Source: Oopsacas minuta (Eukaryota > Animalia > Porifera). Taken from it: a stretch of 64,000 nt of DNA. The position numbers and the translations under genes are program-made. Each line of letters starts with the position of its first letter. The stretch's first letter is position 1. The notes beneath the pieces were generated by a model. The model saw only the letters and a list, made by a program, of their open reading frames with translations. It was not told the DNA's origin and ran no database searches. Below are positions 7,538-44,753 of the stretch, piece after piece. The DNA lies in NCBI GenBank assembly GCA_024704765.1, contig JAKMXF010000155.1:706098-770097 (forward strand), read 5' to 3'.

Positions 7538-7763
7538 ATGGCGCTAAATCAGGCTGGGATTTTCTTTATGGGGCTGTCATAGCTTGCTCTTCTTTGAGAA
7601 AATATTAATGTGTACTTAAATATCAAAATATTAATTGATTTAAGAAAGTTTCGTTTCTAGTAATATAATTAATAGAAGCAATAACATTGTTCACTATTAA
7701 TAATTCAATACTTATTAAAAGTATTTCCAAAATATTTTTAAGTGAAATGGATGAATGAATAAA

Positions 7764-10077
7764 TCAGCTCAATTGAATCCTCCGATCTCCAGTTTTATCG
7801 AATTTGTCCGCCATCTCGCCCATATCTATTTTGGATGCACGAGTCCTATTGATTGACAAAGTCAGAGGTCTCCCAGTCTATCACCATCCATAGTGCTACG
7901 AAGATACGTCTTAACACGTTTCATACAAGAGAATGATTAATCATTCTCAGCTGTTGTAACAAGGATGTTACATGCTATCTGGTAGGCCTTGTAGAGTTCT
8001 GTGTAGACCATTTTGTGTGGCTCGATGATGTTAATGACCTCTAATATAGTTTTCAACTGTGGATTAGCCTTTCTATATTGATTGGAGAACACAGTAAATT
8101 CGCTACTTTGTAATTCCTCATTCAGATGATAGTGCTCAATAAAGAACTTCGTTGCATGGATCTTAAGGAAATCATCAGATGTGGGAATCAATGATGACAT
8201 CGCCAAAAGGACAGAACACGTGTCCTTGCTGCAACGTCTATTAAGTTCAGCTATGAAGAGTCTAACAACTGGATCGAATAATCTCACTTTGTAGTCCGAT
8301 TTGATCCACACTCTAGAATTAACAGCATCTTCTTTACAAACTCGACGGCGTTTTACGATCGGCTGCGGTATCGCGTGTTCATCTAAGAGTGCCTTTGCGG
8401 TATCCCAGATTTCATCAAATAAGTCCTCGGCAGAGAGAGACATCTTGAGTGTATCAATGTGATTAACTGCAATGCCAATATCCAAGTGTTTGTCCTGCAT
8501 ATAGTTTGCCGAATATGAAGTTAGTGTCAGAACTTTTCTGAATAATTGAAGACAGACCACGAAGTGAGTATCAATAAAATTGATGATACCTTGCGCTGCA
8601 GCACTTCTATCGGTGTTGGTATCTTCTGCGAAATGCACAGTGGCAGCAATGATTCCCCCTAAAGTATGCGCCACAGCAGAGCAAGCCTCGGATTGACAGC
8701 ACCAACGAGTTTTGGATAACAATTTCAATTCACGATGTTGCGCCTCATGTGTACCCAGGACCTTCTGCGTTTTCTCGAAGAAATCAAGTGGAGCTAAATT
8801 TGAGAAGAATGTGTAGAGCTGTTCAATACTCGCATAAATGACACGCTTTGTCGATATTTTGGCGCAAGCAACCACTACTAAGTTGAGCCTGTGTGCCCAC
8901 CAATGCACATATAAGGCCATCGGGTATACTTTACTCCTCATAAGTGCTTGTAGACCATGTAGTCGTCCACTCATTGTTGAAGCACCATCATTACACTGGG
9001 CAGCCATATGATCACGAACGCAGACACCCACAACTGCCAGCACATGAGCCGGCTTTACCACGATGGAATTCGTGTCTAGCCCCTCTGCTCTGATGAAATT
9101 GAAGAAATAGTCGTGCAACTCACCCTCGTAGACATATCTTACACAAACGGATATTTGTTCAATTTCCCCACAATCTCTAGATTCGTCCGCCAATAAAGAA
9201 AAATATTTCTCCGTCATTAGTTCTTCTAGAATTTTCTGGCGTACAGAGTTGGCAAGAATAGACAATATCGAATCCTGGATAGAGTGATGAACATACTGAG
9301 CATTTCTAGGTCGTTGACTTTCTCTTTGATAACCTTACCGTGGACACCAAACGCAGTAACAATTTCGAGAAAATTCCCTCTCTTTCGAGATCCGCAGTTG
9401 AACTCTGGGCCAATGACTTCACCCATATCATCCACCAATCTTCCCTCACGGTCACCTCTGAGAAGAAGGCCTTGTACAGCACAGAGGGTGATTACCTGAC
9501 CTACTATTTTTACATAGTGCCGATTATCTTGAACAGCTTGCATGCTCAGTGCTCCAACTATTACCTCAATGCTTTCTGTACGAAGATTACCTTTGTATCC
9601 TGACCATTTGAGCATTGAATTAAGATGAGATAACGACTCCTCATGAAGTTTGATACCTTTTCTTCTCCATCGCAATTTTCCAATTGTCAAACCTAAAGAA
9701 GTCCACTTTAACTCATGACCAGCACCAGCTACCTGAAATAACCTACAAGGATAGCAAAAACATGGCATCGATTATTCGAGAATACTCAAGCCCATGTCTG
9801 CCAATGTACTATCCTTTATGAAAGCAACGCATCTGGCCGCCTAACATGGTTTGCTTATAAGTGATTAACTTCGGCTGTCTCAGGTCCTCAGACAGATTCT
9901 GTGCACTTTCTGGAACGTCCTCCGCAGAGACATCCATCGCCGTTTTGCACGTTTAGGATTGTGAGAGTAAGTATCTTCTGGATGTTCAATTATTACATCT
10001 TCCACTTCAAATTCCTGAGTTGCTTCTGGCTGGTCCACTTCAATCTCATCACGCTTTCTCTTCACAAAGGAACCCAT
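7764..10077 (-). pseudogene. Decayed hAT transposase (ZMYM1/DUF4371-like with C-terminal dimerisation domain)
   Basis: ORFs 9880-10077, 9226-9768 (CFCYPCRLF, LLLRGD, GNFLEIV) and 7937-9265 (FSLLADESRD, AQCNDGASTMSG, YVHWWAHRLNLVV, LSKTRW). A hand-read continuation gives SFSCMKRVKTYLRSTM up to a stop at 7764. Termini not found. Confidence 0.92.
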
Positions 10078-10359: not shown

Positions 10360-12930
10360 CACTGATATGCAGCATTTTTGATGATCTTCTTTCTCTATTA
10401 TTTTTGCATAGTGTGGATATATATTCGGAATTATTAAGTATTATTTTCATCCTCAAGGGTACTAAAAGCATGAAATTTCTATTTTAGTTATTTCGGTCTT
10501 TTAATTGACTACATGGTCAAAGTATTTCTGATTTCATTTCTACACATCACCCTTATCCAATTTATTTGGTTGCAATTGCTTATATGATGTAAATTGCCTC
10601 TAATTGTAGTTGTTATTTGATTGATTCCACTCGACATTTAGTTTATCTTGTTCATTTTATTGTTTATGGCTTCTTGGGTTTGTAAAAATTCTCCTGAAAA
10701 GTTTTGTTATATTTGTGGGAGGTATACTACAACTGACCAACGGCAAAATATCACCAAGGCTGTAGAACGCTGTTATTTCGCATATTTTGGATGCCATCTT
10801 GGGAATCAAGATAAGCCGTGGGCTCCACACAATGCATGTAAGACATGCGTTGGGAACTTACGCTTGTGGTATGCTGGGAAGAGAAAGAAAATGCCGTTTG
10901 CAGTTCCAATGATATGGAGAGAACCTTTGTGTCATCTTTCGGATTGTTATTTCTGTATACCAAAAATTGATGGTATCACAAAATGAATGAATCCAGTATT
11001 GCGTACCCAGACGTACCGTCCGCCATTAGGCCAGTTCCACATTCAGAGGACCTACCTGTACCAGTTCCATCAGAAATATTGGACATTAGCAGTGACAATG
11101 ATAGTAGTGGAGATTCTGACGAGTACATACTCCCACCAGACGATAATTCTCCTCAGCTTTTGATCAAGGTGATCTTGACGACCTAATAAGAGATCTTAAT
11201 TTACCAAAATCGTCTTCAGAAATTCTTGCTTCACATCTAAAAGAGAAGAATTTACTACTTCCGGGGGTGAATATTTCAAAATATCGAACTAGAGAACAAG
11301 ATTTCCTTAAATTTTTTCACGTACAGCCATCATTTGTATATTGTGGAAATATTCCTGGTCTGGTAGAAAAGCTTGGAGTGAAATATAATCCTGAAGAATG
11401 GCGATTATTTATTGATTCCTCTAAAAGAAGTTTAAAGGGAGTGTTACTCCATAATGGTAACAAGCTTGCGTGTTTTCCAGTTGCATATTCTTTTCAGCTT
11501 AAGGAGACTTACGACACCATGAAGGTTTTCCTAGATGCACTAAATTACACTATGCATCGATGGTTAATTTGGGGAGATCTTAAGGTCGTATCATTACTTC
11601 TCGGACAACAAGGTAGTTATACCAAATATCCATGTTTCCTGTGTTTGTGGGATAGCCGTGCAGACGCTCGACATTACGTCCAGAAAGTGTGGCCGAATCG
11701 AGACCATTTAGTTCCTGGTAGTCACAATCTTATCCAAGAACTACTTGTGGATTCTAACGATGTCTTGTTACCACCTCTTCACATTAAACTTGGTTTAATG
11801 AAAAGTTTTGTGAAGGCATGCCTAAGGAAAGTGGAGGTTTTTGTACCTCGTGGAAAGATTCCTTGCATTTTCTGATGCGAAGATTAAAGGTGGCATCTTT
11901 GTTGTACCACAAATAAGGGAGCTATTAAAAGATGATGAATTTCTTAAAAAATTAAATAGCCTAGAGAGGAAAGCTTGGCTGAGTTTTCGTGATGTAGTGG
12001 AAGGTTTCCTTGGAAATCACAAAGTTGACAACTATGCTGACATTGTCGAGAGATTAATAGAGAATTACAAAATGCTCGGTGCGAGAATGTCTATAAAAAT
12101 CCATTTCCTTCACTCACACCTGGATTATTTTCCAAAAAATCTTGGGGCATTAAGCGAAGATCAAGGCGAACGTTTCATCAAGATATTAGTGACATTGAAC
12201 ACAGATACCAAGGAAAATGGAATTCCAGTATGATGGCGGACTACTGTTGGTGTTTGAAACGCAACAAGCCGGACGTTCTATACAAAAGAAAGTCGAGGAA
12301 AAGACAATTTTTAGACGATTAAATTTGAATCTATATTATTAAATCTCAATTGTTGTCTATTTGTTTGTCTGTCTGTTCGTTTGTCTGTTGCTAAGGAAGC
12401 TGAAATAGAATGTGGAATTCATATTTGCAAAATGTTGGACCTTTATATCTATGGTGTTAATCAGGAAGATATACAAACGGGTGCATTGATTTCGAATATC
12501 GTATCGTCAGTAGCATGTGATAAATATTTGTTGTTGTTTAGTAGCATAAAGAAACAAATTCCAAAATTATCCTAGAAACGTGGTTTCAACGGTCATTGTG
12601 GGGTAATCGGGTACGCTGATTCTGAATATCACACAAACTAATAGTCAAAGCGAGGGCCAAAGGCCGAGTACGGACACGAAGTGTTAGAATCCGCGTAACA
12701 CGTTAGTGATAGTTAATGTTAGTATTATTTAGTAGGTAATAAACATAAATGTATGTTTAATTTCATATATTTAATCGCATATTGGTGCAATCTTCCAACC
12801 AGAAAATTATAAATTCTAGACCTGTTGTGAATATATACTTAACTCATTCATAAACAGTCCCTTCAAATTATTCAATTTCAGCTATTCTTGTTTAATCATC
12901 AAAAACATTTTATAATTTTGTACATCAGTG
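10360..12930 (+). mobile_element. Chapaev3-like (CMC superfamily) element, copy 1; frameshifted transposase ~10666-12322
   Basis: TAA|CACTGAT...ATCAGTG|TAA with a 3-bp TWA TSD. Motifs CKNSPEKFCYICG, QDKPWAPH..C..C, WREP..H..DCYFC, WRLFIDSSKRSLK, GDLK, CFLCLWDSRA, PPLHIKLGLMK, KIHFLHSHLD, SEDQGERF. The family name comes from my recall of Chapaev3 termini and motifs. Confidence 0.85.
12330..12706 (+). mobile_element. Non-autonomous Helitron-like element nested in the 3' UTR of Chapaev copy 1
   Basis: 5' A|TCTATATTATTAAA followed by (GTYT)n-like simple sequence. 3' GGACAC-GAA-GTGTTA hairpin remnant, then TTAG|T. No TSD, AT target. Confidence 0.6.
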
Positions 12931-19300: not shown

Positions 19301-21270
19301 GAAAATTGATCATAGCTACCAGTAACTCCTATTATAATGAGTTATTAGTAAATCCAATTATCTACAATGTATCTCTTATTTATCCTTGATCCAGAAAATA
19401 ATTGTTGTTCATAAATTACGTCGTTCATGCATAAACGTATTTCGCCAGAATTTCTCCATGATTGAATATTCTTATATAATGAGATCAAACAAGATTTGGA
19501 AATGGATCCTGAGATATGTTGTCCAGTGGCATTCACAGGGAGGCATCAAGGCACAAACGTATAAAGTTTCCGTGGGTAGTATCTCTTAGAATTTCTTCTT
19601 TTTATCCCTAGAATCGCAGTTTATTGTATTCCTAGTATACAGGTCAAAATCTAAGCTTATGCAGCGCATCTACTTACACATAGTCATATATATTTATCCT
19701 CAATGATTATTTTGTCCGAACATAATTTTGGAGATGTTAAGAACTAGAATATTATTGCAGATTGCTACAAATTATGGACCATAACCAGACCGGACCGACC
19801 AAGGTGGGACCAAGCAAAGACTGAACTGGACTAGCATATGATAGTTTTTTGGTTCTTATCTGATTTATTTGTATTTCTAACACCAGTTGCGCTTTACTTT
19901 TATTTAATAACCCAATTTATAACAGTAACTACTATATTTGGTTTTATATAATCTCTTAAGCTTCCCATCATTATTTCATGCCGCTAGTAGAGACGCATCG
20001 TTCAGAACGGATCTGACCGTACAACCCTACTGGAATCTTAAAATTTGGAAATTAGAAATAATAAATCTAGTACCATTAACAAAGAACTAATGTATATCTC
20101 GACAAATCCTTATATCTTGTGATCATGTGACCTATCCGATTTGAGGTTAACAATTATTAGAATATAGCCATCAGGTTCTCAACCCTGGCCCGCGATTATG
20201 TTAAAATGGCGCGTAATGAACTCTGTGTTCAACAGACAATGGCAATATTTCCAATTAGTTTCACTCTTCTCAGCGTTGCATATTTGTTCTGGAGTTACCT
20301 AGTTCCATTCTTATCATTGGAAATCGGTTGACTGTTAAAACTATCACATGTATCCGTTTGGGGAAATCAACCGACTTCAAACTGTGTAGAATATCGTTTA
20401 TCCCATGAAAACGTGTAGTCAGTCATTATTCATCAAACTCATAAGATGTTGGTTATATCGACTGTTAAAAAGGTGGGTAAACAGGGTGGCACAATCTACT
20501 GTTTACTACAGGCAGGTTTGTTTACGGACATTTCACCTACCAAAAATTTAATTAATAAATATTATGCTATGTTTATATGTTATATTCTCTATACTACTAG
20601 GATACAACATTGATTAAATTGGTATGGAGGTAAAGTAGTATTTTACACACTTGAAATCATAGTAGTTAAAGGTTGCGACTCCTTGCACCACCACACTGCA
20701 TACCCCCTGCTTTTCAAATTTTCATATTTGAAATCGTGTTCAGATCATTTAAAGGGTCGAAATGTGTATAAACAAACTCAGCTGTCCTAGCGGCGTCGTA
20801 CAAGTCCCTTGATAGGGTTGAGGCAAATTTTGAGCAAGAAACTGTGCTACATTCTTGGGACATTCATGTATTGCTAGGGAAAATATATTCGAGTGATCAC
20901 GTGAATGATGTCAAATCTTTCACTGAATACGAGCATCCCTCAAAATTCGTTTCTATTAGAACTGGATGAATATATTCTTTTTACCCAACTACTAATTGTC
21001 AATAAATATTATTTTTCCAAATATTATATGTACAGACTTGCTTCAGCGGCTAGAATGGGGTAACAAAGTATGTTGAGTCCGAGTTTTGCATTGACAAGTT
21101 TCTTATTTGTGTCCTTTGTTTGATATTGTTTTAAATTTGATATCTAATACTTTTCATAAAATTGTGAAATTTCGAAATCATTATTCAATTATACAATGCT
21201 TAATTAGATGCACAAAGTGCCGGTCCCATGCTAATATAGTGTGTTCGCATGTCAGGCATCATAGTATTAG

Positions 21271-21641
<371 letters not shown>

Positions 21642-21815
21642 TACTTCCTTAACCACAGTAGGGCCCGCTACAGGATAGATGGTAAACCTGCTAAGAATTC
21701 TCCACGGTCCCCGAAATATATCATACTTTGTATTACAAATTGCCATAGTTCGCAATTGTTCTAAATTTATTTTGGTATCCTTCTCCACCTAAAGGCCTCG
21801 AGTGATAATATATAA

Positions 21816-26110: not shown

Positions 26111-27599
26111 CACGAGTGTGAAGTTAGCCTAGTATTCGACCACGTAAACTTCAATCACTAATTTTATTAACCTATACACCTCTAATTAAACGTAAGTGGT
26201 GTCATTCGATATAGAATTGTTGGACGTTTTAGGCAATATTAATAGTTTTCAAATATTTACTTTACTCACTAGTTTTTGTAATAGTGAGTATGTGTACTAC
26301 TTCATTCGAAATTTCGGTATAAATTTTGAATTTGATTCTGGAATTTGTTTCCAATATTTCGTACATATGGACGTTTATGTATATTAAAATTCATTCCAAA
26401 ATTCTTACAACTCGCTGGGCTATCAGATTTTAAAGTTGAAGTTGGAAGTGAGAATTGGGAGGGTTAGATTATATTATCCATGAAGTAGGGTCAGTTCAAA
26501 CTGTTGTTCCTTAACCTATACCAAATTGATTCTAAATATTTAATGCTTATCAATAGATGAGATGTGAACGTTTCCCGGATATACATATTATCGTGAAATA
26601 CCAAAAAATTAGCACCCTCAACAGCATTCTAATCATCATTAAATTCAGAGTTTTTTGTGTATTACGAACTCCAACTTTGAAGACAATTTTCTAAATTATC
26701 TACCGCCAGAATCGCCTTAAACTTTACAAGCAACCTCTATCGTATTCTATAATTGACTTTCTTAAAGAAAAACAGGGGTCACTATTCGTTTTATTCCTTT
26801 TTATCATTTTGAAGTTATCCATTATTTAACAATTTCTTTGGTCTTTACAATGCTCCATAGCTGCTGTACAGACCATCTGTGTTATCTTGTAAGTATGTAC
26901 ACAGTGGCTGTGATCATACGTGCAACAGGTGTGAATATTTCAAACTGATATTTCATATTCAAAATGAAACTGAATCTGTATTATTAGTACAATTGAAAGA
27001 AGAAATGGGACGGTTATTGCAATAGTGATATTCTCGCGTATTACTATATTTAACACTCACAACGGTGTTCTAAAAATCCTCGGTTTGTGGTGTATTCTGT
27101 TTCTTAAAATGAATTCCAATTTATAAATCCATGATAAGGATAATTATAGCCAGGATTTCTTAAAACCTTATATAGCAACCTTCTTTGGTGTACTGTAATT
27201 CGATCCTCGATAGAAGATTACGATGGCTAGTCATTTTATACCTCTATATTCTTAAATTTACTTACTTTACTACAAAAATTGTATTTGTAATCCATACTCT
27301 GCCAAACCAAACTATAATTCTTTCTCCCTAAATGATTTGTGACATCATTGCTATTTCCAATTTCAAGTGTTTGATGCTACATTGTTTATTTCCATTTTGC
27401 GTGGCATACGAAGTACGAAATATGCTTTAGACAATATCATTAACTGCTTCATCATTAATGAAATTATTTTGAACTTCAGCTTGTGTTTTTTCATCATTTG
27501 CTTTTTTGTATTTTGAAACTTCTTTCTCTTGCTTTGCACCTTCTTTTATTCGCGATCCTATTGTGAATATCATGATTGCTATTCTATTATGGTGTGCTC

Positions 27600-28900
27600 G
27601 CAATGGTATGCACTCTCTCTGCGAATCTCCCAATAATTCTGGATCATCCCTGATTATCCTGTTTCGGCTAAGTTCCGTATTTTGTATAAGATCCGTTTAT
27701 AATACTATGTACATTGCTAAACAAATCCAACTCTTTGAATTTTCCTGAACCATGCTGTAGTTTTAAATTTAGACGCTACTGGTTCCCTTATTAGCAAACA
27801 TCCTTCTTGTTCAAACTAAATATTTTATTACTCTCTGACAATGCAACATCCCCAGTATTCTGCCATTTCGATACCAGTTGTAGAGATGACTAGCAGTGAT
27901 CATAGCACTGCTGAAATCTTACATTTCTTAAACAAATGGTGTTTAAGTACAAAACTAGGTATTAATAGGAAATTACAAATTAATAATGTGGAAATGGATT
28001 ATAGCTGGACGATGACATAAAGTACTTGTTTAGCATTTAATTGTTACTATTCTGAATGCCTCCAAAATTGCGGAGATTTGTAATTAATAGTGAACATTTA
28101 AATATACCGGCTATGCTACATCTGTTCTGCTCATGTAATGCACTGGGTTAGTTATAATTAGACAAACATTTCAAATAGATAAAACATAAAATGAATAATT
28201 TTGTATGTATTTGATCACATCTTGAACATTAATAATATTCATGAAATTGACTATCTATTCGAATTATTTTTTATGTTTGTGTTCAGAAACACAATTTGTG
28301 TTCTTCGAAATATAGTAGTTGAATTTGGACAGTGTATTAAGAGTTAGAGTGTATTTAGTATTGAATCCCCGAAGATTTCCAGGACGGTGATTTTGCTAAA
28401 GAAAATGGCTTAACTTATAGATAGAAGTCACTATTCTGTAAGCATTTTGAACAAATTTATAATACTACTCTACTTATCATAATAAATAATGTAAGTGTGA
28501 TTAAATTAATATTTGTTATCATCCTCAAATAATAGAGTTTGTTTTAACATGTTACATGCCATTATAAGAAATTATATTCCATCTAAGATGCTGCATGTTC
28601 CCGGAGATTGAAACTCTTTATTTTCTTCTCTCTCATATTGTGTCACAGATAGTATTGACAATTTCATGAAATGCGTTCCTTAATTGTAGAAAATATGATT
28701 AGAAAATATGATTGGAAATTTGAACGAAGAGTGTAGTAGGTTTATTTGTAACAAATTTCGACGATCTGTAATTAATTATAGGAATGTTAACGGCTACATA
28801 ATTTAATCCAAAATACACAATTACTAAACATTGGGGACTGATGTTGAGTTATTCGCATCAACACATGTTACAAATGGATATTTGGGTAATATACGGATGG
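27600..28900 (+). pseudogene. NOF-like MULE transposase relic
   Basis: DATGS (first catalytic D, ~27772), MDYSW (second D) and CSAH (C2H motif), read by hand across stops. Extent approximate. Confidence 0.7.
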
Positions 28901-29724
28901 CATTTCTGGGAGTGGTAAATAATTGATCTATATTCTAGAATCAACACCTATTAACCCATATGAATCTATATATATAAATCACAGCGGAGTTCATTATGAG
29001 TCAATTGTAAGTATAGATTACTAATTTTAAGTAATGAATACTGTCTAACAATTAAATTATTATCTTTGTATACGTAGTCATAATTACTGGTGTCTGCAGT
29101 ATATTAACTAATTTATTTGTGGAACTAATTTCGGCAATTGGCTGTGGGATATACATTAATAATAGACAATTGAAACAAAAATATTTCGGATCTTTTCTCA
29201 GAAATTGTAATTGATTAAATACAGTATAACTCAGATAATACCGATCCCCTCGGAAAGCAAAAATTAGTACGACTACTGAAGTACGCTTTATTCGAATCTT
29301 TTTCCTACACGATAGTGCAAGAATAAAATTTACATACTGTAGAAGTCATACTAACGGAGTTTTACTGTATGTAAATCTTAATATTTGTTAGAACCAGTTA
29401 AATGTATAGAGTCAATCAGTAATGTATATTATTTCACAGGGGGGAGTTTGGAATTAGGAACCAGTCGTATAAGTTTAAACTACACCTTTGTATCCATAAA
29501 TTAGAATTATTCCTCAATTGTATGTTATGTACCCAAGTTACTTAAAGTCAATTAACTAAAATAATTGATATATATAAGGCCATATAAAATAATATACTTG
29601 TTTATCATCCCCGCTCACCCCATTTAATTTCCCTCCTCGGCAATTTTTTTAATTTTAAAACATATCTTTATTTAATAATTATATTCGCAGATGAGCATCT
29701 TCGAAACAAACTAATTATTTAACA

Positions 29725-29925
29725 CTAGCGCCCTTCGCTTGCTAGGTCGCTGAGCAGTGTGGCTACTCATGTGATTTTTCGAAAAATCAAAAAAGGTGGC
29801 AATGGCATCATAATTTCGTCCAAGACTCAAATCTGTCCGAGTCAGGCCCAATTTCCCCACCCTGTATGGCAAAAATCAGTCCTGGGGTGTGCACTAAATT
29901 CTTATCATTATTATTTAAATTGTAC
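29725..29925 (-). mobile_element. Helitron-like family B, copy 3 (internally deleted), nested in the MULE
   Basis: A|CTAGCGCCCTTCGCTTGCTAGGTCGCTG matches the end of copy 2 (A|CTAGGGCGCTTCACTTGCTAGGTCGCTG) and joins directly to CATAATTTCGTCCAAGACTCAAA..TGTCCGAG, shared with ~22280-22350. Confidence 0.65.
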
Positions 29926-32900
29926 AATAATTCAGATTATAGAGAGGAAGTGAATATTAGTTTCCCATATGCAGTGAAAGCTTATACGAGCACCAACGTA
30001 CCTTACGGTAAAAATTTATTCGCTTTTCCGGAGTTCATAGTCCGGAGTAATATCTATTGAAGTACGGTTGTAGGGACCTGATTATGTCGAATATTGTTCG
30101 TCTTATCAGAAATTGGTATTAACGAGATAGTATAAATAAATTTTAAAATACGCTAAGCATAAATAAAAATTAAATGCCACCCCCGCCCCCATTTCGCAGA
30201 AAAAATGGATGAGAAACAAGTAATTTATTTTATATCGCCTAACCTGAAAATCTCATGAAAACTTACTACATGAATATATATGTATTTAACTATTACTCGT
30301 TCGTTCCAATAGAGAATATCTTATGTCAGTTAATTTCCTCAATCAACTCTGTTGCATGTATTATTAATTAATCTTGTAAAAGTTGAGGACATACTCTGAA
30401 TAGGGAATCCAGAATCAAACCTAAGGAATTTGAAGTTGAGAATTTAACCCCACATATAAATTATATATCCGCATTGGTTTATTGGGTAGAATAATATTCT
30501 GTGCTATGCTTAAATTCTGAAGACAATATTTCTGATGATATCCAAAAATTGTTGAGAATTTCTTCATTATTATGAAACAAAAAATGGACTAAAAACATGC
30601 CATAAGATTGACATGAGACACAAAGCGATTTTGATATTATAAGTGAACATTGGGTTTATTTACCATTACCAGGATATAGCTAGTCAACACACTGTCGGTC
30701 GTAGACAAATTCATTGAAGAGCTCTTCTACTGATGTCCTTATTAGATTATTGTAAATAAGCGAATTTAATGTGTAATTCTATGCTGAATATTTTTTGTGC
30801 ATCCAAGATATAACGAATAGTATATGTGTAATTCCATATCGATTTTTGTATGTTCTGTTCAAATTGTCTATAAATACAAATGGATTTCGTTACAACTCCT
30901 AGCAGATTCTCATTATTCATTTCTATTTCAATAAGATTATAGTACTTTCCAGTATAATATCTATTGAGGTAATCATTTTTGGAGAAAAATCTTTAGAAAT
31001 ATTCATTTGGAAAATCTACTTGTTTGTGGTTCCTACATTTATAATTTGCTACATTATTGAATTTCTTAAAAAGTGTAAAGAATTTGTGAAGTGCAAAATA
31101 GAATGGTAACTAAAGTAAGTAGAATAATGTGACTTCCTATACCTAAGATTACAGTCACTGTGTATAGGCTTACAAGATAACAACGATGGTCTATACAGAA
31201 GCTATAGTATATTACAAAGACTAGAGAATTTGAGAAATAATAGATACTATAAAAGGATTAAAATGTAATAAAAACTACTAGCAACCCCCCTCTTGTATTT
31301 CTTTAAGAAATTGATTTATAGAATTCGATGGAAGTTATCTGTAAAATTTGATTCGATTCTGGTGGTAAATACTTTCGAGAGTTGATTCCAGAGTTGGAGT
31401 TCGTAATGCACAAAACCTCATATTTAAATAATTTTTAGAATGCTGGGAGGGTGCTAATTTTTTTGGTATTTCACGATAATACTGATATCGTTAGAAACGT
31501 TCACATCTCAACTATCGATTAACATTAAAATATTTTAAATTCAGTTTTGTATAGGCTAAGGAACAACAGTTTGAACTGACCCTACTTTATGTATAATATA
31601 ATCTATCCCCCCTCAAATCTCACTTCCAACTTCAACTTTGAAATCTGATAACTCAGCGAGTTGTAAGAATTTTGGAATGAAATTTAATTTATATACATAA
31701 ACGTTCATATCTCCTTAATATAGGATAGGGAATTTCAGAATCAATTTCAAAATTTATACCGAAATTTCGAACAAAGTTGTATACATACTCATTATTACGA
31801 TAACTAGTGAATAAAGTAAAAAAAAATGAAATTCTTTATTTTGCCTAAACGTCCGACAATCCTCTATCGAATGATACCAATTACGTTTAATCAGCTGTGC
31901 AAGTGAGTATAATTAGTGATTGAAGTTTACATGGTCGAATACGAGGCTAACTTCGCACTCGTCATCGCTCAAACTTCACCCCCCTATGTCTCTTTCGGAT
32001 AAATCTTGTGTTTAACTCACAGGATTATCAGCAGCAAAAGCTTTCATTCCATTAAATGTAACATTTGTGGGAATTTAAACGAAAAGTAATGAATGACTCA
32101 CTTATAGGGCTATCGAATGACTAAACCTTTCTTATTGATGTGACTATCAATGACTTTGTGGTACGTTCGCACCAAGATTTTGATTTGGCTTATTTGTTAC
32201 TTATATTCATATGAATAACTAATATATTTGCATCTAATGAAACCTGATTTGTACGAACTCCTGATTAGCGAACAAATGTTTTTGTCCTTCCTTTCGTGCT
32301 CGTATTAACGAAGTTCTAATTTATGATTGATTCAAAAGTGTGAAAATCGAAATCAGTAATTTTGGTACTTTTCTACAAATTTTTAAAATTATGTTTACTT
32401 TCTTGTTAAACATGATAAAGGTATATTTTCTAACATTTTGGGATTGAGAAATTCTAATTCAATATTGCATACCATATATCCCTTTTCTTAACAACGAACA
32501 AACAGACAAACAATCAGACAACTTTACTAGGTTAGTTATTAAATTATGTTAATGTTTTGATAAATAATAATTATCCAGACAATGAAGGATTCTAGGATAC
32601 TATTTATCTAAGGTAAATCATTATTCTGATTATTTAATTTCACTGAAAATATTTAGCATTTCAACTTGCATGTCTTTTATCTTATTGGAGTCGCCAATTC
32701 GTTGGAGCAGCACTAGATAGTTTTCAAATACATCACTAATGCGAATTGCATTCGAAAGTGTCTAGGATTGACGATGAAGGAAATATATCAATTGATGATT
32801 CGATATTTCCATAGGATATAAGTGAGGAGCTCGATATCCAACTTGCACAGCTTTATCGAAGCGAGACTGAAGATTTAGATGATACTGTTCATGAGCTACA

Positions 32901-37149: not shown

Positions 37150-38880
37150 TGAATATGCTCGATTACTGCAATGATTCTTCCAGCGAAAGCAGCAAACCAA
37201 GAATGTTGTATCTTTGAAAATTTTGGTTTCCCGAATATTTATATAGAGTTGTTATTATTTAATGCAGCTATGTACTTACGTTTAGCATATTCAGAGCATT
37301 ACAGAGATTTAATTAAAAGTCTTAGAGATGTATGTGCGTCTGTACATATTTTGTGTATTAGTTCTAACTTGATTTTACATGTATTGTGTAGATTGCTAGC
37401 TTTGTCGTATATTATAATACGCGGGGGCTTTTTTGAACAATGACAGGACTAGGTTGAATACTGTAGTTATAGATCTTTACTATGAAGTATTTGAATCCTT
37501 GGCACACTATATGTCTACAGACAACAACTAACAGTCCTGGTGATAATCATCGATGTTTCAGATACATTTTTGTACATTCTTTATATTCCTCCTCGTTATC
37601 ATCTTCATATATCAGTGATCTATGGGTTGATTATATTTGAAAGTTTGCACTATAGACTTTTAGATTATATTTTCAGCATATGCATCATACTGAATGAATA
37701 GTTGAATATAATTATACTGGAAAGTAATTATATAGAGTATCATTTGATGGGAAAGTATCTACCTTCTTCCTTCCTTCTATATGGTTATTGAGTAATTCAA
37801 TCTTGGATAGAATAGCCATTGGAACACCTGCAAGAATAGGATGAAGTCTGAATCCTATACTATTAGTACATCAACTTCACCAAACGAGCTAAGGAATAGC
37901 ATTAGTGTATGCATTTTTTCGAAAATCTCATAAAGCAGACATGCATCAATTTGGTTACCACAAGAGATATTTTCAGTAGCTTCCTTCTCGCACTCGTTTG
38001 GCATAGATACAGGAGGATGCTAGGAATTAATTCTGATCTGGAGAATAGTTCCGTAATGGTTAGCATTAGGATAGTTCAGGCTAATTAGATGGACCTCATC
38101 AATTACACTGTCAGCGTAAATGATGTACTCTGTAATTTCTTCAAACTCCAAAGAGTTGACCATGTATGAAACTCGCTTTCACCTAATTCAAAGGAATAAC
38201 ACTATTTGATAAATTTTCTTAATGTAGATCAGTTACCAATAGCCTTTTTGATAATGGTACAAATGATAGCCTCAGATCCTCCAGGTATTCCTCGACTGTA
38301 TTCGGGAGTTCCTTAATTGTCCCCATTGTTATACCATCCATAATCAAGAATTCTGGAGCTTTTTGGCATAATCGGCAAATGTAGTTTGTCTTATAGTTGA
38401 TGTCGAACATAACTAAGCACCTATTCCATCCATGCTGTAGTATATGAGAACTAATGGTGAGTTCCAAACCTATCCTCTCAAATTTATTGTTTTTGCTCTA
38501 AAATAGAATAAAGAGTAACCACGTCAGCTTTCTAAAATGAATATGATATAATTGGTTATATAATTATGACTATCGACCGTAATAGATCACTTGCAATCAA
38601 TCTATATGTTTCCTTTGTTATTTTGGTATTCAATGGAATACATACGCAACCGACAAAATGAATGTATTCTAAAATACATACCTCGTGTATCCATGGAGTG
38701 TATTCCGTGACATCGTCATAAACTCGCTGTATTCAAATAAACTCCATAGCGGATGATGTGGAAATTGTTGACATTCAGCACTAAATAATTTTCTCCTTCA
38801 AACACAGAGGTGCATTTATAACTTCCTTTCCAAGTGGAATACCGACAAATCGCACCTAATGTGATTGGCCAATTGATTTG
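37150..38880 (-). pseudogene. KDZ (Kyakuja-Dileera-Zisupton)/HMGXB3-type transposase fossil
   Basis: Minus-strand motifs in order: C..VFEGENYLVLNVNN (CxC-like, ~38800); YICRLCQKAPEFLIMDGITMG (ORF 38219-38467); ECTKMYLKH..LSPGLLVVVCRHIVCQGF (~37500-37580); VFNLVLSLFKKAPRIIIYDKASNLH (~37390-37460). Termini not found. Confidence 0.7.
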
Positions 38881-40157
38881 ATAATTATTTCAATTTAGAT
38901 TATAGGGAAAATAATGAATCGATCACAAGTATTATCTGTTGCGTAACTAACTACTATTATAAACTACTAGTACCTGGAAGTCGCTTCCATTTCGTTAAAA
39001 CCTGAATTCAGTATAGCAGATAAGATAATATTTGCAGTTTGATGTTATATAGACTTGCTTCTGCTTAGGTCGAATTTCGTTATATAGCTGATATTCGATT
39101 TGGTTAAAACGAGAGTCCACGGTATTAGTGACCCGGCCCCCACCAAAGGTTCACCGAGCACCCGAGCATTGAGTTCGAGGGCAATTGATTACCAATCAAA
39201 TCGATGTTATAATCCTAGGGTTTCCTATGCCTCTATTGTAGGCTAACAACGCAAATAACCTCAGATCTCTCCCCACAACCAGGGCCGGATTAAGGCATAG
39301 GGCCCCGTACTTCGAGGGATAAATTTGACGATATGAATGGATTAAACCAATCCAGTATTTTTAATTTCCCTGTTTGACCATGTAAAATATATTACATGTT
39401 TTTAATCCCGAATTTCCTCGAAAACTAGGATTGCGGATGATGGTGTTATTGAGTTAATATGTAATATATTGTTTAAACCTTCGATTATTTCATCACTTTC
39501 TCTTTGGGTATATATTTAAACTCTATCATTTTTCCTCGTCCGAATTGATAGAAAAAGTGGTTTGAGATACAGACTTGAAATTAGATACGGGGGTTGGGAA
39601 TGACGTTTCTGGAAACATGTTTAAATATCTAATGACAATATTCACAACTTCTCACATAGTTCACATTTTTTTCTACTTACTTAGGGGTTAATAACACAAA
39701 AATTCAAAAGGTGTTGAAATTATACTCCTAAAGGCTATGATGGGGTAATCAAGTATGCCAATTATGATTTTAGCATCATGTGATCAATTACTTTTGTTGT
39801 TTATGTACATAAAGTAAACTAATTTCATAAAGTTCGTATACTTTTAACGGCTATAGAGGTAATCGAGTTTTCGAATGTGATGTTGTGAATGGTGCACTGT
39901 GAATACTCGATTTAACCACCCTGTTAGTCACAGTAAATCAACGCTTTTCGGTTTCTAATCGATAACAAGTCAGATGAATCAAGTAAAGTTATAAATCAGC
40001 TATTTTGAATGTCCAATATGTCTACAAAGTAATGGTATAACATTATGATAAATTATGATAATATGTCCAAAGAATATGAGAAAAGTGAGAGTGAGAAAGA
40101 TCAAGACAGGTACCGCATCATAGCCACTGTTCTTCTCCCATGTAGCTACATCTCAAT

Positions 40158-40240
40158 AGAAAGGATAGAAGGCTGGAATAGAGTGGAGTGGAGAGGAGAA
40201 GAGAGGGGGAGTTGAGTGGAGTGAGGAGAGAAAGGAGGTG
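40158..40240 (+). repeat. Polypurine GA/GGA-rich low-complexity tract abutting the palindrome
   Basis: AGAAAGGATAGAAGG...GAGTGGAGTGGAGAGGAGAAGAGAGGGGGAGTTGAGTGGAGTGAGGAGAGAAAGGAGG. Confidence 0.85.
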
Positions 40241-40245
40241 TGATT

Positions 40246-42168
40246 CATTGATTATGTGAGCAAAGAGTGGTTTGTAAAGCTAGAGTTCATACTAAAGGGA
40301 TGATGATAGTCAAGCGCACGAATGAGCAATCCCATGTTCCTGACGAGCAGGCAGCTGGCTGGTGTGAAGCGAAGGCAGGCATGAAGAGGAAAGCATGGAA
40401 TCCCAGGACAGTACACACCACATAGTGGGCGAAAGTTTGCAGACAACATCAGAGGGTACTGCTACTAAACTACCCAAGCTTGACAGCCTGAAGGGGACGA
40501 TACAATGCCAACGAGCTAGTGCGCTTGCTGCTCCAGCATAGCCTATCACTCTAGCAGAGCTAGCCCTACCAGTAGTCTATCAGCAGCCAGCCAAGGGAGA
40601 GCAGTTCTTACTCTACGACTCTGGTGAGGATGATGTACTCAGATTTCTCATCTTCGGGACACAACGCAACCCCAGGATGCTGCGGCAAAGCAAGATCTGG
40701 CTAGCTGATAGTACCTTCAAGGCAGCGCCTTCCCTCTTCGCCCAGGTGTATGTGGTGCATGGACTCCTTGGAGGAGATGACCCTATGAAGACCGGTCATC
40801 TGTTGCCGAACCTGTTCGTGCTACTTCCCAACAAGACAGAGGACACCATATAGCCGCGACGTTCCCCATTGACCTGTGGAACTACCACTTCAGCACGCCC
40901 TTCGGACTCCCCCGTACAACCAACACCGTAGAGGCATGGTACCACAGCTTCAATGCCACTGTCGGCTGCCATCACCCCACCATATGGAAGTTCATCCTCG
41001 CCCTCAAGCGGGGCCAGGGCCTAGTGGAGATGCGGCAGACTAACTACCTTGCTGGGAAGCCACTAACCAAGCGGAGGAGGTCTCAACAGTATGAGTGAGC
41101 GATGAAGACTCTAGTTGGAGAATATTATTCACCAAATCGTACTAAGATGGAGTTCTTGCTGGATGTAGCATATCTTAACCAGTTAATCTAAAGTATTATC
41201 TTTTCATCATTCACATTTGATTTTTGATAATACTGAAATGATGTGCTACATCCAGCAAGAACTCCATCTTAGTACGATTTGGTGAATAATATTCTCCAAC
41301 TAGAGTCTTCATCGCTCACTCATACTGTTGAGACCTCCTCCGCTTGGTTAGTGGCTTCCCAGCAAGGTAGTTAGTCTGCCGCATCTCCACTAGGCCCTGG
41401 CCCCGCTTGAGGGCGAGGATGAACTTCCATATGGTGGGGTGATGGCAGCCGACAGTGGCATTGAAGCTGTGGTACCATGCCTCTACGGTGTTGGTTGTAC
41501 GGGGGAGTCCGAAGGGCGTGCTGAAGTGGTAGTTCCACAGGTCAATGGGGAACGTCGCGGCTATATGGTGTCCTCTGTCTTGTTGGGAAGTAGCACGAAC
41601 AGGTTCGGCAACAGATGACCGGTCTTCATAGGGTCATCTCCTCCAAGGAGTCCATGCACCACATACACCTGGGCGAAGAGGGAAGGCGCTGCCTTGAAGG
41701 TACTATCAGCTAGCCAGATCTTGCTTTGCCGCAGCATCCTGGGGTTGCGTTGTGTCCCGAAGATGAGAAATCTGAGTACATCATCCTCACCAGAGTCGTA
41801 GAGTAAGAACTGCTCTCCCTTGGCTGGCTGCTGATAGACTACTGGTAGGGCTAGCTCTGCTAGAGTGATAGGCTATGCTGGAGCAGCAAGCGCACTAGCT
41901 CGTTGGCATTGTATCGTCCCCTTCAGGCTGTCAAGCTTGGGTAGTTTAGTAGCAGTACCCTCTGATGTTGTCTGCAAACTTTCGCCCACTATGTGGTGTG
42001 TACTGTCCTGGGATTCCATGCTTTCCTCTTCATGCCTGCCTTCGCTTCACACCAGCCAGCTGCCTGCTCGTCAGGAACATGGGATTGCTCATTCGTGCGC
42101 TTGACTATCATCATCCCTTTAGTATGAACTCTAGCTTTGCAAACCACTCTTTGCTCACATAATCAATG
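40246..42168. repeat. Near-perfect palindrome: arms 40246-41170 and 41244-42168 (925 bp each), 73-bp spacer
   Basis: Paired coordinates sum to 82414 throughout, including the mirrored ORFs 40310-40549/41865-42104 and 40252-40449/41965-42162. One mismatch found by manual comparison (40275 T vs 42139 G). Confidence 0.98.
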
Positions 42169-42285
42169 CGTCATATCTTCAACTCTCCTCTGTACTCCAA
42201 ATAATTATTCACTGTCGAACAGCCTGTCTCCTCCTCTTTGTGCCTTGGTCAGCTTAAACTTCGACTGATCAAGAGGTTCCGCCAT
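41211..42285 (-). pseudogene. Internally deleted FLYWCH-MULE (Mutator-like) transposase; original copy of the palindrome
   Basis: ATG 42285 MAEPLDQSKFKLTKAQRGGDRLF...(W)LCEQRVVCKARVHT (FLYWCH-like); WLADSTFKAAPSLFAQVYVVHG; LPNKTEDT-[deletion]-FPIDLWN...PRTTNTVEAWYHSFN...HPTIWKFI; ends DVAHHFSIIKNQM* at 41211. Confidence 0.9.
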
Positions 42286-42758
42286 TAAGGATTGTCAAAT
42301 TTAAAAATACACAAGTTATAAGTAATATTGTGAAAACGAATCTGAGTTTGAACAAGATCATTTTCCATTTATGTCCGAGGATTGCACTATCACAGGTGAT
42401 TACATCCTGTTTACTATATTCCTCTTTACCAAATATAGCCCCGAGAGTATTTACTTCGTATGTGTTTACTTACTTTAGCAATCTTTTGATTTCACATCAT
42501 TAAATGGATTCCAATGGAATGCATATCATCTAAAATTAGGATTATCTATCCTATTGAAAGACTTGTCTGTATGCAGAAATATTTATTAGACAATGGATTA
42601 ATTATGTATAATTTGATTACATTAATTCATTAATTAATATCGCACCAAATTGACCAATCAAATAAGTTGTGAATTGTTGGTATCCGTTCCAAGTGGATGT
42701 ATACACTAAAAATAGAGTAAATACACTAGCTTGAATATTTAAAGACAAATACAGTATA

Positions 42759-44063
42759 CGAAGGGCACTCGAAAAGTTTTGTCGTTTCTTATTAAACCAC
42801 AAGTATTTTCTGGTAAAATTATTTTATATATATTTAGACGCATATTATTTACCTGCACGACAAATTTCATCAGTTTATCTTTTGTACTTTTCGAATTGCT
42901 TGATTTCCTAAAGCTATGGCTTGTATGATTCCTCAACCAGAATCTGACCTCACAAAACGCGATTTTAGAGCGATGATTTTAATTTTGTTCAAACTTGAGG
43001 AGAGCCGTTTGGAAATACGCGAAACTTTGCTGAGCACTTCCGAAATATAGCTCCTTGTTGGAGAACAGTAGAGCGATGGTACTCAGAGTTTATTCATGGA
43101 AATTTTATTCTTGAAGATGGTCCCCGTCCTGGTAGGTCCAGTATTACACATACGGTCGAAAATGTAGAGCTGGTATTGGACGAAGTAACAAAAGACTCTC
43201 ATGTTACTTACGCTCAGTTAAAACATGAAACCAAATGGTCATCGGGGAGTACAAACGTCATCTTACATAAAGAGCTCGGTCTTAGAAAGTTATGTGCACG
43301 TTGGATCCCGCATTCTTTGTCGTCCGATCAGAAAAAGTGCCGAGTGGACTTTTGCAAAATTATGCTTAAAAGATTTGTTAATGAACTTCTAGAGCTGTTT
43401 CTGAAATACTCACAGGCGATGAGACATGGATATACCACTATGACCCAGAAACGAAGAGACAATCTAAGGAGTGGGTCGAAGAAGGTGGTTTACCTCCAAC
43501 AAAGGTCGGAGAATTAGATCAGTCGGAAAGCAGATGTGGGCGATTTTCTTTAGACGTAGTGAATTTGTTGAAGGAATTGCACTTGAGGATAGGAAGACAG
43601 TCACCGCTGATTGGTATACCACAATATGTCTTCTCAAAGTATTCAGTGTTATCGAAAGACAACGTGAGAAGTCAGGTGTCGAGGATTCCTGCTTCACCAC
43701 GATAATGCTTCATCATATACAGCACTAAGAACTCGTGAGTTTTTACAGAATCATAGGATCGGAACGCTACCCCACCCACCCTACAGTCCAGATCTAGCCC
43801 CTTGCGATTTTTGGTTATTCCCAAAGCTGAAAGATCAACTTCGTGGGAGGAGATTTTTCAGCAATGAAGAGTTAATCGGGGCACTTTTCTTAGCAATTGA
43901 GGAGATACCCAAAGAAGAATGGAAATGTGCTTTGATACCTGGTTTAAACGCATGAATAGGTGTATAGAGTGTTAGGGTGAGTATTTTGAAAAAATGTGAC
44001 CATATAGTATGTAATACCTATTATATAAGTATATAAACGACAAAACATTTCGAGTGCCCCTCG
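42759..44063 (+). mobile_element. mariner DD34D element, full length, decayed transposase 42916-43999
   Basis: TA|CGA(A/G)GGGCACTCGAAA(A/T)GTTTTGTCGTTT TIRs with TA TSD. Motifs LCARWIPHSL, HHDNAS...HPPYSPDLAPCDFWLFPKLK (34 spacing), EYFEKM*. Confidence 0.96.
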
Positions 44064-44753
44064 TATATCGTATATACTATGAGTATCTTTATCTTACCTG
44101 CATGTTCTTACAAATTGAGGACATCATTTTCTGTGTATATGATGGTATCTTTGTTTGCTATGACAAGATCTTTGACACTATGTTTGTGTCCTTGCTCACA
44201 ATGCGAAATATCTGTTTTTACGGTTCGGGTGTAGAAATAATCCTTCTCCTAACTGTTCATTATATATAATAGCCTGATTCTTACTAAGTTTAAAAAGAAG
44301 ATATTGTTTATATATAGTAGATTAATCAATAGGTTACTGAGGAACGGCTAACTGATCGTTATTTTCTGCCAAAATTGGCTGTAGAGTTAACATTTCTTCG
44401 CACATATTACTACAATTGTAGCAATGCGGCTTCATTTATTTCTTATATAGGCAATTATAGCCATTCTTTTTCAAAAGAAATGGTTTAAGGTTTGGAATTC
44501 TAAACACAATTCATATGCTTGGTAATGTAAGCAAGAATTCGTAGGATAAGATAATCATTTCATCAGATTAGTTTCTATCACTTTTTTCTTGGTCAATGTT
44601 CCTTCACCTGGAAAATTAAAACATGATTTCTGAGAATATTTATAATATTATTAGAACACATTAGCTATATGATGGTATAATGTTTACATTAGCTAAATGT
44701 CATGGTATAATGAAAACTTAAAATCTACAGTGTTGCATTATTGTACAAAGTCT

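Follow-up and report, generated by a model that had tools for sequence, protein, structure and literature searches.

Mu killer of maize is a single derivative locus in which part of MuDR has been duplicated in inverted orientation; its two sides have the same TIR-A end, and its dominant silencing effect is proven (Slotkin et al. 2003, 2005, as described in PMC3440606). Mutator-like elements (MULEs) generate target-site duplications (TSDs) of 8-11 bp (PMC6446971), and their Phantom subclass is marked by FLYWCH and MULE domains, according to the paper on the element Tm1 (PMC3169594). The words "sponge" and "Porifera" are absent from the text of a survey of MULE diversity published in 2019 (PMC6446971), and a literature search found no published Phantom element or MULE with a mirrored transposase gene. 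Here we describe a stretch of 64,000 nucleotides from the glass sponge Oopsacas minuta (assembly GCA_024704765.1, contig JAKMXF010000155.1, positions 706,098 to 770,097 of the forward strand), hereafter the window, in which a palindrome of transposase sequence lies inside a transposon at 38837-42686. This transposon is likely to be a dead copy of a Phantom-type family whose members carry an inherited internal palindrome with homogenised arms.

The palindrome and its enclosing element

The two mirror arms of the palindrome, 40246-41170 and 41244-42168, measure 925 bp each and were found in an exact scan about their axis to be reverse-complementary, with no indels and a sole mismatch between 40275 T and 42139 G (TGT/TGC). 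A repeat search of the window also returned the same inverted pair (939 nt at 99%). Both results bear out the initial annotation of this DNA, which had described a near-perfect inverted duplication with one synonymous difference. The G+C content is 0.52 in the arms versus approximately 0.33-0.36 in the flanks, and translation revealed identical stops and frame changes in both arms. No second copy of the element was found elsewhere in the 64-kb window.

The transposase copy of the left arm has its sense on the plus strand and that of the right arm on the minus strand. Read in three frames across several stops, the right copy leads from a FLYWCH finger through a linker and the start of the MULE core to ...LPNKTEDT, then through ...HIAATFPIDLWN... 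and on to the C-terminal region. Only this right copy reaches the N-terminus MAEPLDQSKF... (ATG 42285), by way of a native coding remainder that contains the first half of the FLYWCH finger (42169-42285, minus strand); the left copy is N-terminally truncated and starts within the finger.

The family was assigned through relatives because the decayed pieces of the window copy give only a weak FLYWCH signal: in a Pfam search of its six stop-free pieces, the one match was that of 41992-42162 to FLYWCH (14.7 bits, E = 0.036, below the cut-off of 23.6). A 103-amino acid (aa) piece of the core has O. minuta proteins as its best protein matches (64-81% identity), some of which are named MULE- or FLYWCH-domain proteins and one of which bears the ichnovirus-derived name GfV-C17-ORF1. 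The loci fetched for matching proteins all belong to assembly GCA_024704765.1, and nine related O. minuta loci (L001 to L009) form the family sample. The colinear open reading frame (ORF) of L001 matches PF10551 (MULE) with 35 bits against a cut-off of 27.6, the homologous ORF of L007 matches FLYWCH with 25.1 bits, above the same cut-off of 23.6, and intact relatives carry both PF10551 and PF04500. The features of Phantom-type Mutator elements are therefore found here: a MULE (DDE) domain and an N-terminal FLYWCH finger, both through relatives, and a TSD beside terminal repeats. A homologous stretch in L003, in L007 and in the right copies of L002 and L004 shows that the right-hand N-terminus is native, and the earlier statement that the minus-strand copy retains this N-terminus together with its 5' region holds. 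The catalytic triad of the window copy is broken, with the second catalytic Asp (DFEKGA) and the CxxH motif deleted, in addition to the several stops and frame changes. Judged from its sequence, this copy is a non-autonomous, dead Phantom-type (FLYWCH plus MULE) Mutator element.

The palindrome is enclosed in a complete 3.85-kb transposon with terminal inverted repeats of approximately 45 bp. The left repeat (38837-38880, plus strand, about 45 nt) is about 76% like the right repeat with which it is paired (42643-42686, minus strand) and 93% like the matching end of L003. A 9-bp TSD, TTCCAAGTG, stands at 38828-38836 and 42687-42695, and the direct repeat outside the termini is identical over 11 nt (38828-38838 and 42687-42697). 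L003 and L007 have matching terminal repeats, each with a 9-bp duplication of its own, GAAATTTTC in L003 and TTGGAAAAG in L007. Homology to L003, L007 and L009 reaches past the arms, to 42681 on the right and over 39911-39982, 39755-39890 and 38828-38895 on the left. The palindromic element inserts as one unit, with its terminal repeats and 9-bp duplication.

The terminal motif GGGATACCGAC is common to the window element and to two intact elements with a single transposase gene, L010 (ENA assembly ERZ25071281, 4527-6757; 2231 bp with a 477-aa ORF) and L011 (ENA assembly ERZ25069837, 4614-6684; 2071 bp with a 442-aa ORF). Both have terminal repeats of approximately 220 nt built from 15-16-nt subrepeats and no internal palindrome. 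Since these relatives carry a single gene and lack the palindrome, the mirrored gene is a derived state.

Related copies, arm identity and subterminal parts

A tail-to-tail transposase palindrome is present in four of the nine related O. minuta loci. In L007 the arms are 1279 nt long with 5 mismatches around a 26-nt centre, and in L002 they are 971 nt long and 100% identical around a centre of 172 nt. Another transposon is inserted in the centre of L004 (arms of 1281 nt at 98.1%) and a hAT-like insert in that of L008 (arms of 928 nt at 99%, plus 295 nt at 100%). In L001, about 50 nt of the mirror copy are left as a remnant. A sensitive self-BLAST of the single-copy loci L003, L006 and L009 found no diverged mirror remnants, and these loci look like deletion derivatives. 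In all palindromic copies the N-terminally truncated partner is the mirror copy, on the same side, and the high-identity arms start within approximately 70 nt of one point in the FLYWCH finger.

Beyond the arms, the left flanks of L001, L002, L004 and L008 are clearly homologous to one another. In the window element, 39911-39982 matches the sequence directly after the L007 arm (L007 8671-8602) with z = 27, and 40107-40199 scores against the L002 left flank above all 200 dinucleotide shuffles, in a register that recurs with L008. Because four other copies share orientation, centre, outer boundary and flank homology, the layout appears to be inherited and to move with the element.

A tree built from the N-terminal 530 nt pairs the arms of each palindromic copy as sisters that are identical or almost identical. 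Difference between copies amounts to 6-21%, against an arm identity of 98-100% within copies, and palindromic copies fall in both deep clades. The private branch of the window copy, 0.097 substitutions per site, is carried by both of its arms, and the one frameshift of L007 is likewise present in both. In L002, the left and right sides remain homologous, at about 75% identity, for approximately 60-80 nt past the 100% tract, a step of the kind expected where a conversion tract ends. The least similar arms (98-99%) occur in L004 and L008, the copies with kilobase inserts between the arms, which for five copies is only a hint. Copying between the arms, that is gene conversion, most likely maintains their similarity. 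Lesions shared by the arms give no date for the duplication, because arm-to-arm copying explains them equally well. The initial annotation had taken the duplication to post-date decay; this conclusion does not follow, since the layout is inherited and the arms are most likely homogenised. A recent duplication private to this locus is contradicted by the same layout in L002, L004, L007 and L008.

In relatives, the C-terminus of the family reads ...HHFSLGAD* and is followed by a short inverted repeat with a 20-nt stem and a loop of about 22 nt. This 3' inverted repeat is imperfect and conserved in L001, L004, L006 and L008, and the perfect arms of L007 extend up to its loop. The 73-bp gap between the arms of the window copy (41171-41243) is a degenerate remnant of this native repeat and loop that aligns with the L007 centre on both sides, with a loss of 19 nt on the left and of approximately 31 nt on the right. 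The latter loss removed the native ...HHFSLGAD* end, and the stop at 41211, previously proposed as a native C-terminus, is an accident of this deletion. Because the centre is collinear with that of L007 on both sides, 41170/41171 is not a fold-back joint and corresponds to the inner end of the homogenised tract beside a small deletion. The native 3' hairpin would be the obvious site of the original fold-back. A flip of the central loop relative to L007, by recombination between the arms, was also considered; no claim is made, the loop being partly palindromic and the score difference small.

Both arms lack 374 nt relative to L007 (6542-6916), and equally relative to L001, L002, L004 and L006, which agrees with the internal deletion of a Mutator-type transposase reported initially. 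This deletion accounts for the missing Asp and CxxH motif. Its joint is a 7-nt microhomology, GGACACC, located at 40841-40847 in the left arm (plus strand) and at 41567-41573 in the right arm (minus strand), and relatives have GGATACC or GGGTACC on both sides. The deletion point had been placed at NKTEDT/FPIDLWN; the joint at GGACACC is in fact six codons upstream of FPIDLWN, HIAAT being native. Upstream of the joint the window copy is nearest to L003, L007 and L009 (87-88%, with 79-80% to L001, L002 and L008), and downstream of it the copy falls into one clade (support 98/98) with L001, L002 and L008, at 90-93%. The affinity switch falls at the joint itself, so the deletion appears to be at the same time a joint between two subfamilies, symmetric in both arms. 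Such a chimeric joint could come either from one event at a broken centre or from an event in one arm followed by conversion.

The rest of the element consists of subterminal and non-coding parts. To the right of the palindrome, the 5' non-coding region (42286-42642, minus strand) is about 86% like L003 up to 42555. On the left, the internal flank (39755-40245) is common to relatives and ends in a GA-rich tract; 39755-39890 corresponds to the subterminal region of L003, L007 and L009, and 40107-40199 to the left flanks of L002 and L008. Between this flank and the left terminus lies a variable subterminal segment of approximately 876-877 nt (38879-39754), which L006 has (80.6%) but L003, L007 and L009 lack. 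In two sequencing runs, X1 and X3, read contigs contain a joint from 38918 to 39796 that skips 38919-39795; these contigs could represent other element copies or an allele without the subterminal segment. At 40180 and 40204, within the GA-rich left flank, X2 and X3 contigs show A>G and an extra G where X1 has the window sequence, and this is either an allele or a polishing difference.

Other repeats were noted in the surroundings and in the related loci. A mariner/Tc1-like element with 39-nt terminal repeats (42749-44073) starts 53 nt right of the right-hand duplication of the MULE and is 93.7% identical to a copy at L001 1-655. An element of approximately 5.5 kb at 26256-31820 has imperfect terminal inverted repeats of about 600-680 nt, roughly 65% like the 1557-nt inverted arms of L001. 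Those L001 arms (7750-9306 and 11352-12908) are 100% identical and surround a single decayed transposase copy with a left-type upstream flank. A 70-nt piece at 105-175 of the window is 93-95% like L001 8760-8830 and L002 12817-12882, which are subterminal sequence of the family, and a tandem array with a 9-nt period and at least 32 overlapping register copies occupies 21231-21650.

Read support and the origin of the palindrome

Three runs of one sample (X1, X2 and X3) hold the locus and behave like DNA. In their k = 31 contigs (unitigs), the left junction is crossed in X2 (40051-40274, depth 35.8) and X3 (39967-40274, depth 37.5), at the depth of neighbouring unique contigs, and the right junction in all three runs (42139-42302). 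The outer junctions 40245/40246 and 42168/42169, for which a check against artefact had been proposed, are hence supported at single-copy depth. An arm contig, 42031-42168, has a depth of about 76, approximately double the single-copy value, and its end coincides with the arm boundary; the contig ends lie where a de Bruijn graph must branch if the arms span 40246-42168. Junction unitigs of X2 and X3 run exactly to 40275, with the last letter unaligned, and the arm unitig 42031-42168 is without a branch; the single arm mismatch may be absent from the X2 and X3 reads.

Contigs at least 95% identical to the arms reach a summed depth of hundreds to thousands, mostly over the C-terminal part. In the C-terminal transposase part (40893-41053 and 41376-41536) the summed depth at this identity is approximately 100x single copy, far above that of the N-terminal part; the C-terminal region appears to be much more conserved, or more abundant, across the family. 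From 40845 and 41559, loose contig ends continue into the native middle segment, and non-deleted close relatives (at least 95% identity) therefore exist. The uneven depth of X1 was considered as a sign of expression and rejected, since it follows G+C content.

The history that we favour begins with a full transposase gene and an N-terminally truncated mirror copy placed tail to tail, centred on the short inverted repeat just past the stop. A single event would have produced this layout, probably fold-back copying that started at the native 3' hairpin in the course of repair. Repeated arm-to-arm gene conversion, not a recent duplication at the window locus, would then account for the near identity of the arms within each copy. 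The window copy would subsequently have lost 374 bp at the 7-nt microhomology, leaving the joint of two subfamilies that now stands in both arms. Several points weigh against this history. Gene conversion is read from the pattern and was not observed. The native hairpin is able to seed fold-back repeatedly, and some of the palindromes might be independent. The homology of the window's own left flank is modest (z = 4.5 for L002; L001, L004 and L008 not significant singly), and the 22-30 nt adjacent to its left and right arms, which are short and GA-rich, align locally no better than shuffles. Because this own-copy alignment is not significant, the argument for a wider and older duplication rests on the family alignment, and the nine loci sample part of the genome. 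Finally, no read contig is long enough to cover the whole palindrome, and the contig pieces listed do not include the centre junctions.

Three other origins deserve consideration. A single decayed and deleted MULE copy could have been recently inverted-duplicated by fold-back repair after its decay, giving a unique allele of the Mu killer kind. Arms that share all lesions and differ at 0-1 site in 925 would be expected of it, the native 3' hairpin at the centre could prime the fold-back, and the twofold depth of the arm unitig means that the genome holds no further identical arm copy. Such a late local event is nevertheless very unlikely in view of the four other copies with the same orientation and centre, outer boundaries within approximately 70 nt and homologous flanks. 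Moreover, the centre retains sequence from either side of the ancestral one and has two small deletions that differ, not a clean fold-back joint, and the whole element has its own terminal repeats and TSD, as has the palindromic L007. Alternatively, each transposition could generate a new mirror copy, for instance through fold-back synthesis that starts at the 3' hairpin of a broken or single-stranded intermediate, with no ongoing conversion. The position of the native hairpin at the centre fits this idea, and so does the finding that the largest inserts (L004 and L008) accompany the least similar arms, as expected if divergence starts at insertion. We hold it to be quite unlikely, however, because re-synthesis with variable ends would not conserve the outer boundary and the diverged flank homology between copies, nor produce the sharp step inside the duplicated region of L002. 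It would also have no role in cut-and-paste transposition, the mechanism of hAT elements, Transib elements and V(D)J recombination. MULE transposition is likened to these same three systems in the abstract of the Muta1 paper (PMC5499845).

That the palindrome is an assembly or library artefact, such as a fold-back chimera, is extremely unlikely. Palindromes are a known class of artefact and the whole structure is not spanned by contigs, but read unitigs of two or three runs contain both outer junctions at single-copy depth, the centre consists of family sequence and not adapter, the flanks are unique on both sides, and several diverged copies show the same architecture with TSDs of their own. 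The O. minuta assembly was made from PacBio plus Illumina data, and the searched portions of the genome paper mention no genome amplification (PMC10280926). An inherited palindrome with homogenised arms thus remains our preferred explanation.

Silencing potential and comparison with known systems

The long duplex expected from a read-through RNA in the initial annotation is supported by folding prediction: the inner 673 nt, taken as RNA, would form an uninterrupted duplex of -674 kcal/mol (z = -71). If transcribed through, the element must by this model yield a transcript that folds into a duplex of approximately 925 bp. Transcription from the element's own 5' region, or read-through, might then feed Dicer-type small RNAs that repress the family in trans, a functional layer that we regard as possible but doubtful. 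In its favour are the perfection of the predicted duplex and the many family contigs at least 95% identical to the arms in the reads, some of them non-deleted and diverging right at the deletion joint. Argonaute and Piwi genes are reported to be conserved across the four sponge classes, in a sampling of species that includes O. minuta (PMC5381599). Against it, the search for intact relatives recommended at the outset gave a mixed result: non-deleted relatives of at least 95% identity are present in the reads, but no intact O. minuta family protein of at least 378 aa that could be an active target was found in a search spanning 378-1204 aa, where intact members came only from other assemblies, and all fetched O. 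minuta copies are broken. The hairpin is in addition a trait of a many-copy family and not a dedicated locus, and a Pfam scan of long ORFs of the window detected only hAT, mariner and other transposon fragments, with no host-gene domain.

A bolder and unlikely version would see in the family a built-in, distributed Mu killer, in which each copy heritably carries a self-homogenising perfect transposase hairpin and every transcribed copy is a source of double-stranded RNA against the family. Were this true, the hairpin would limit the family or be exploited by the host, and gene conversion would keep the arms perfect because perfection matters.

Taken alone, the window locus is a dead transposon copy and changes little. 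It is the family that is unusual, as a Phantom-type MULE that moves with a tail-to-tail mirror of its own transposase gene, the two halves evolving in concert. Its many copies, with differing centres and inserts, offer natural replicates in which to follow the origin of short palindromes at a native hairpin, their survival and their homogenisation in an animal genome. Provided that the hairpins are transcribed, the family would be a ready test of Mu killer-like hairpin-RNA silencing of DNA transposons in sponges. These copies also caution against dating inverted duplications from the identity of their arms.

The family shares with the Phantom subclass (Marquez and Pritham 2010, as summarised in PMC6446971 and PMC3169594) a FLYWCH finger followed by a MULE domain, a 9-bp TSD and terminal repeats, and among the relatives matched are proteins from crustaceans, a springtail and a parasitoid wasp. 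The Foldback-like MULE Tm1 of root-knot nematodes combines a Phantom-like transposase and 9-bp duplications with composite terminal repeats made of subrepeats (PMC3169594), and L010 and L011 have exactly such a build. In Foldback-type elements the inverted repeats are termini and non-coding, long subrepeat terminal repeats making up most of the element; the window element, in contrast, has short termini (about 45 nt) and a long inverted repeat that is internal and consists of coding transposase sequence.

Like the window palindrome, Mu killer has part of a Mutator-superfamily transposase gene duplicated tail to tail in inverted orientation; the arms are approximately 1 kb long, and read-through could give a long hairpin. 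Mu killer is transcribed from or into a flanking gene and has the same end on both sides, whereas the O. minuta palindrome has two differing ends and lies wholly inside its own terminal repeats. The inverted duplication of a partial MULE gene is thus common to the two; a single derivative locus distinct from ordinary members is not what we find here, since four of nine loci have the same layout and L001 a remnant of it, and the palindrome appears as a heritable trait of a many-copy mobile family. The ampliconic palindromes of the human Y chromosome undergo arm-to-arm gene conversion, and there, as in the present family, the arms are near identical while the whole diverges from its relatives, with sharp identity steps at the arm boundaries. 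The Y-chromosome palindromes extend over tens to hundreds of kilobases, whereas those described here measure approximately 1 kb and are carried by a many-copy mobile element.

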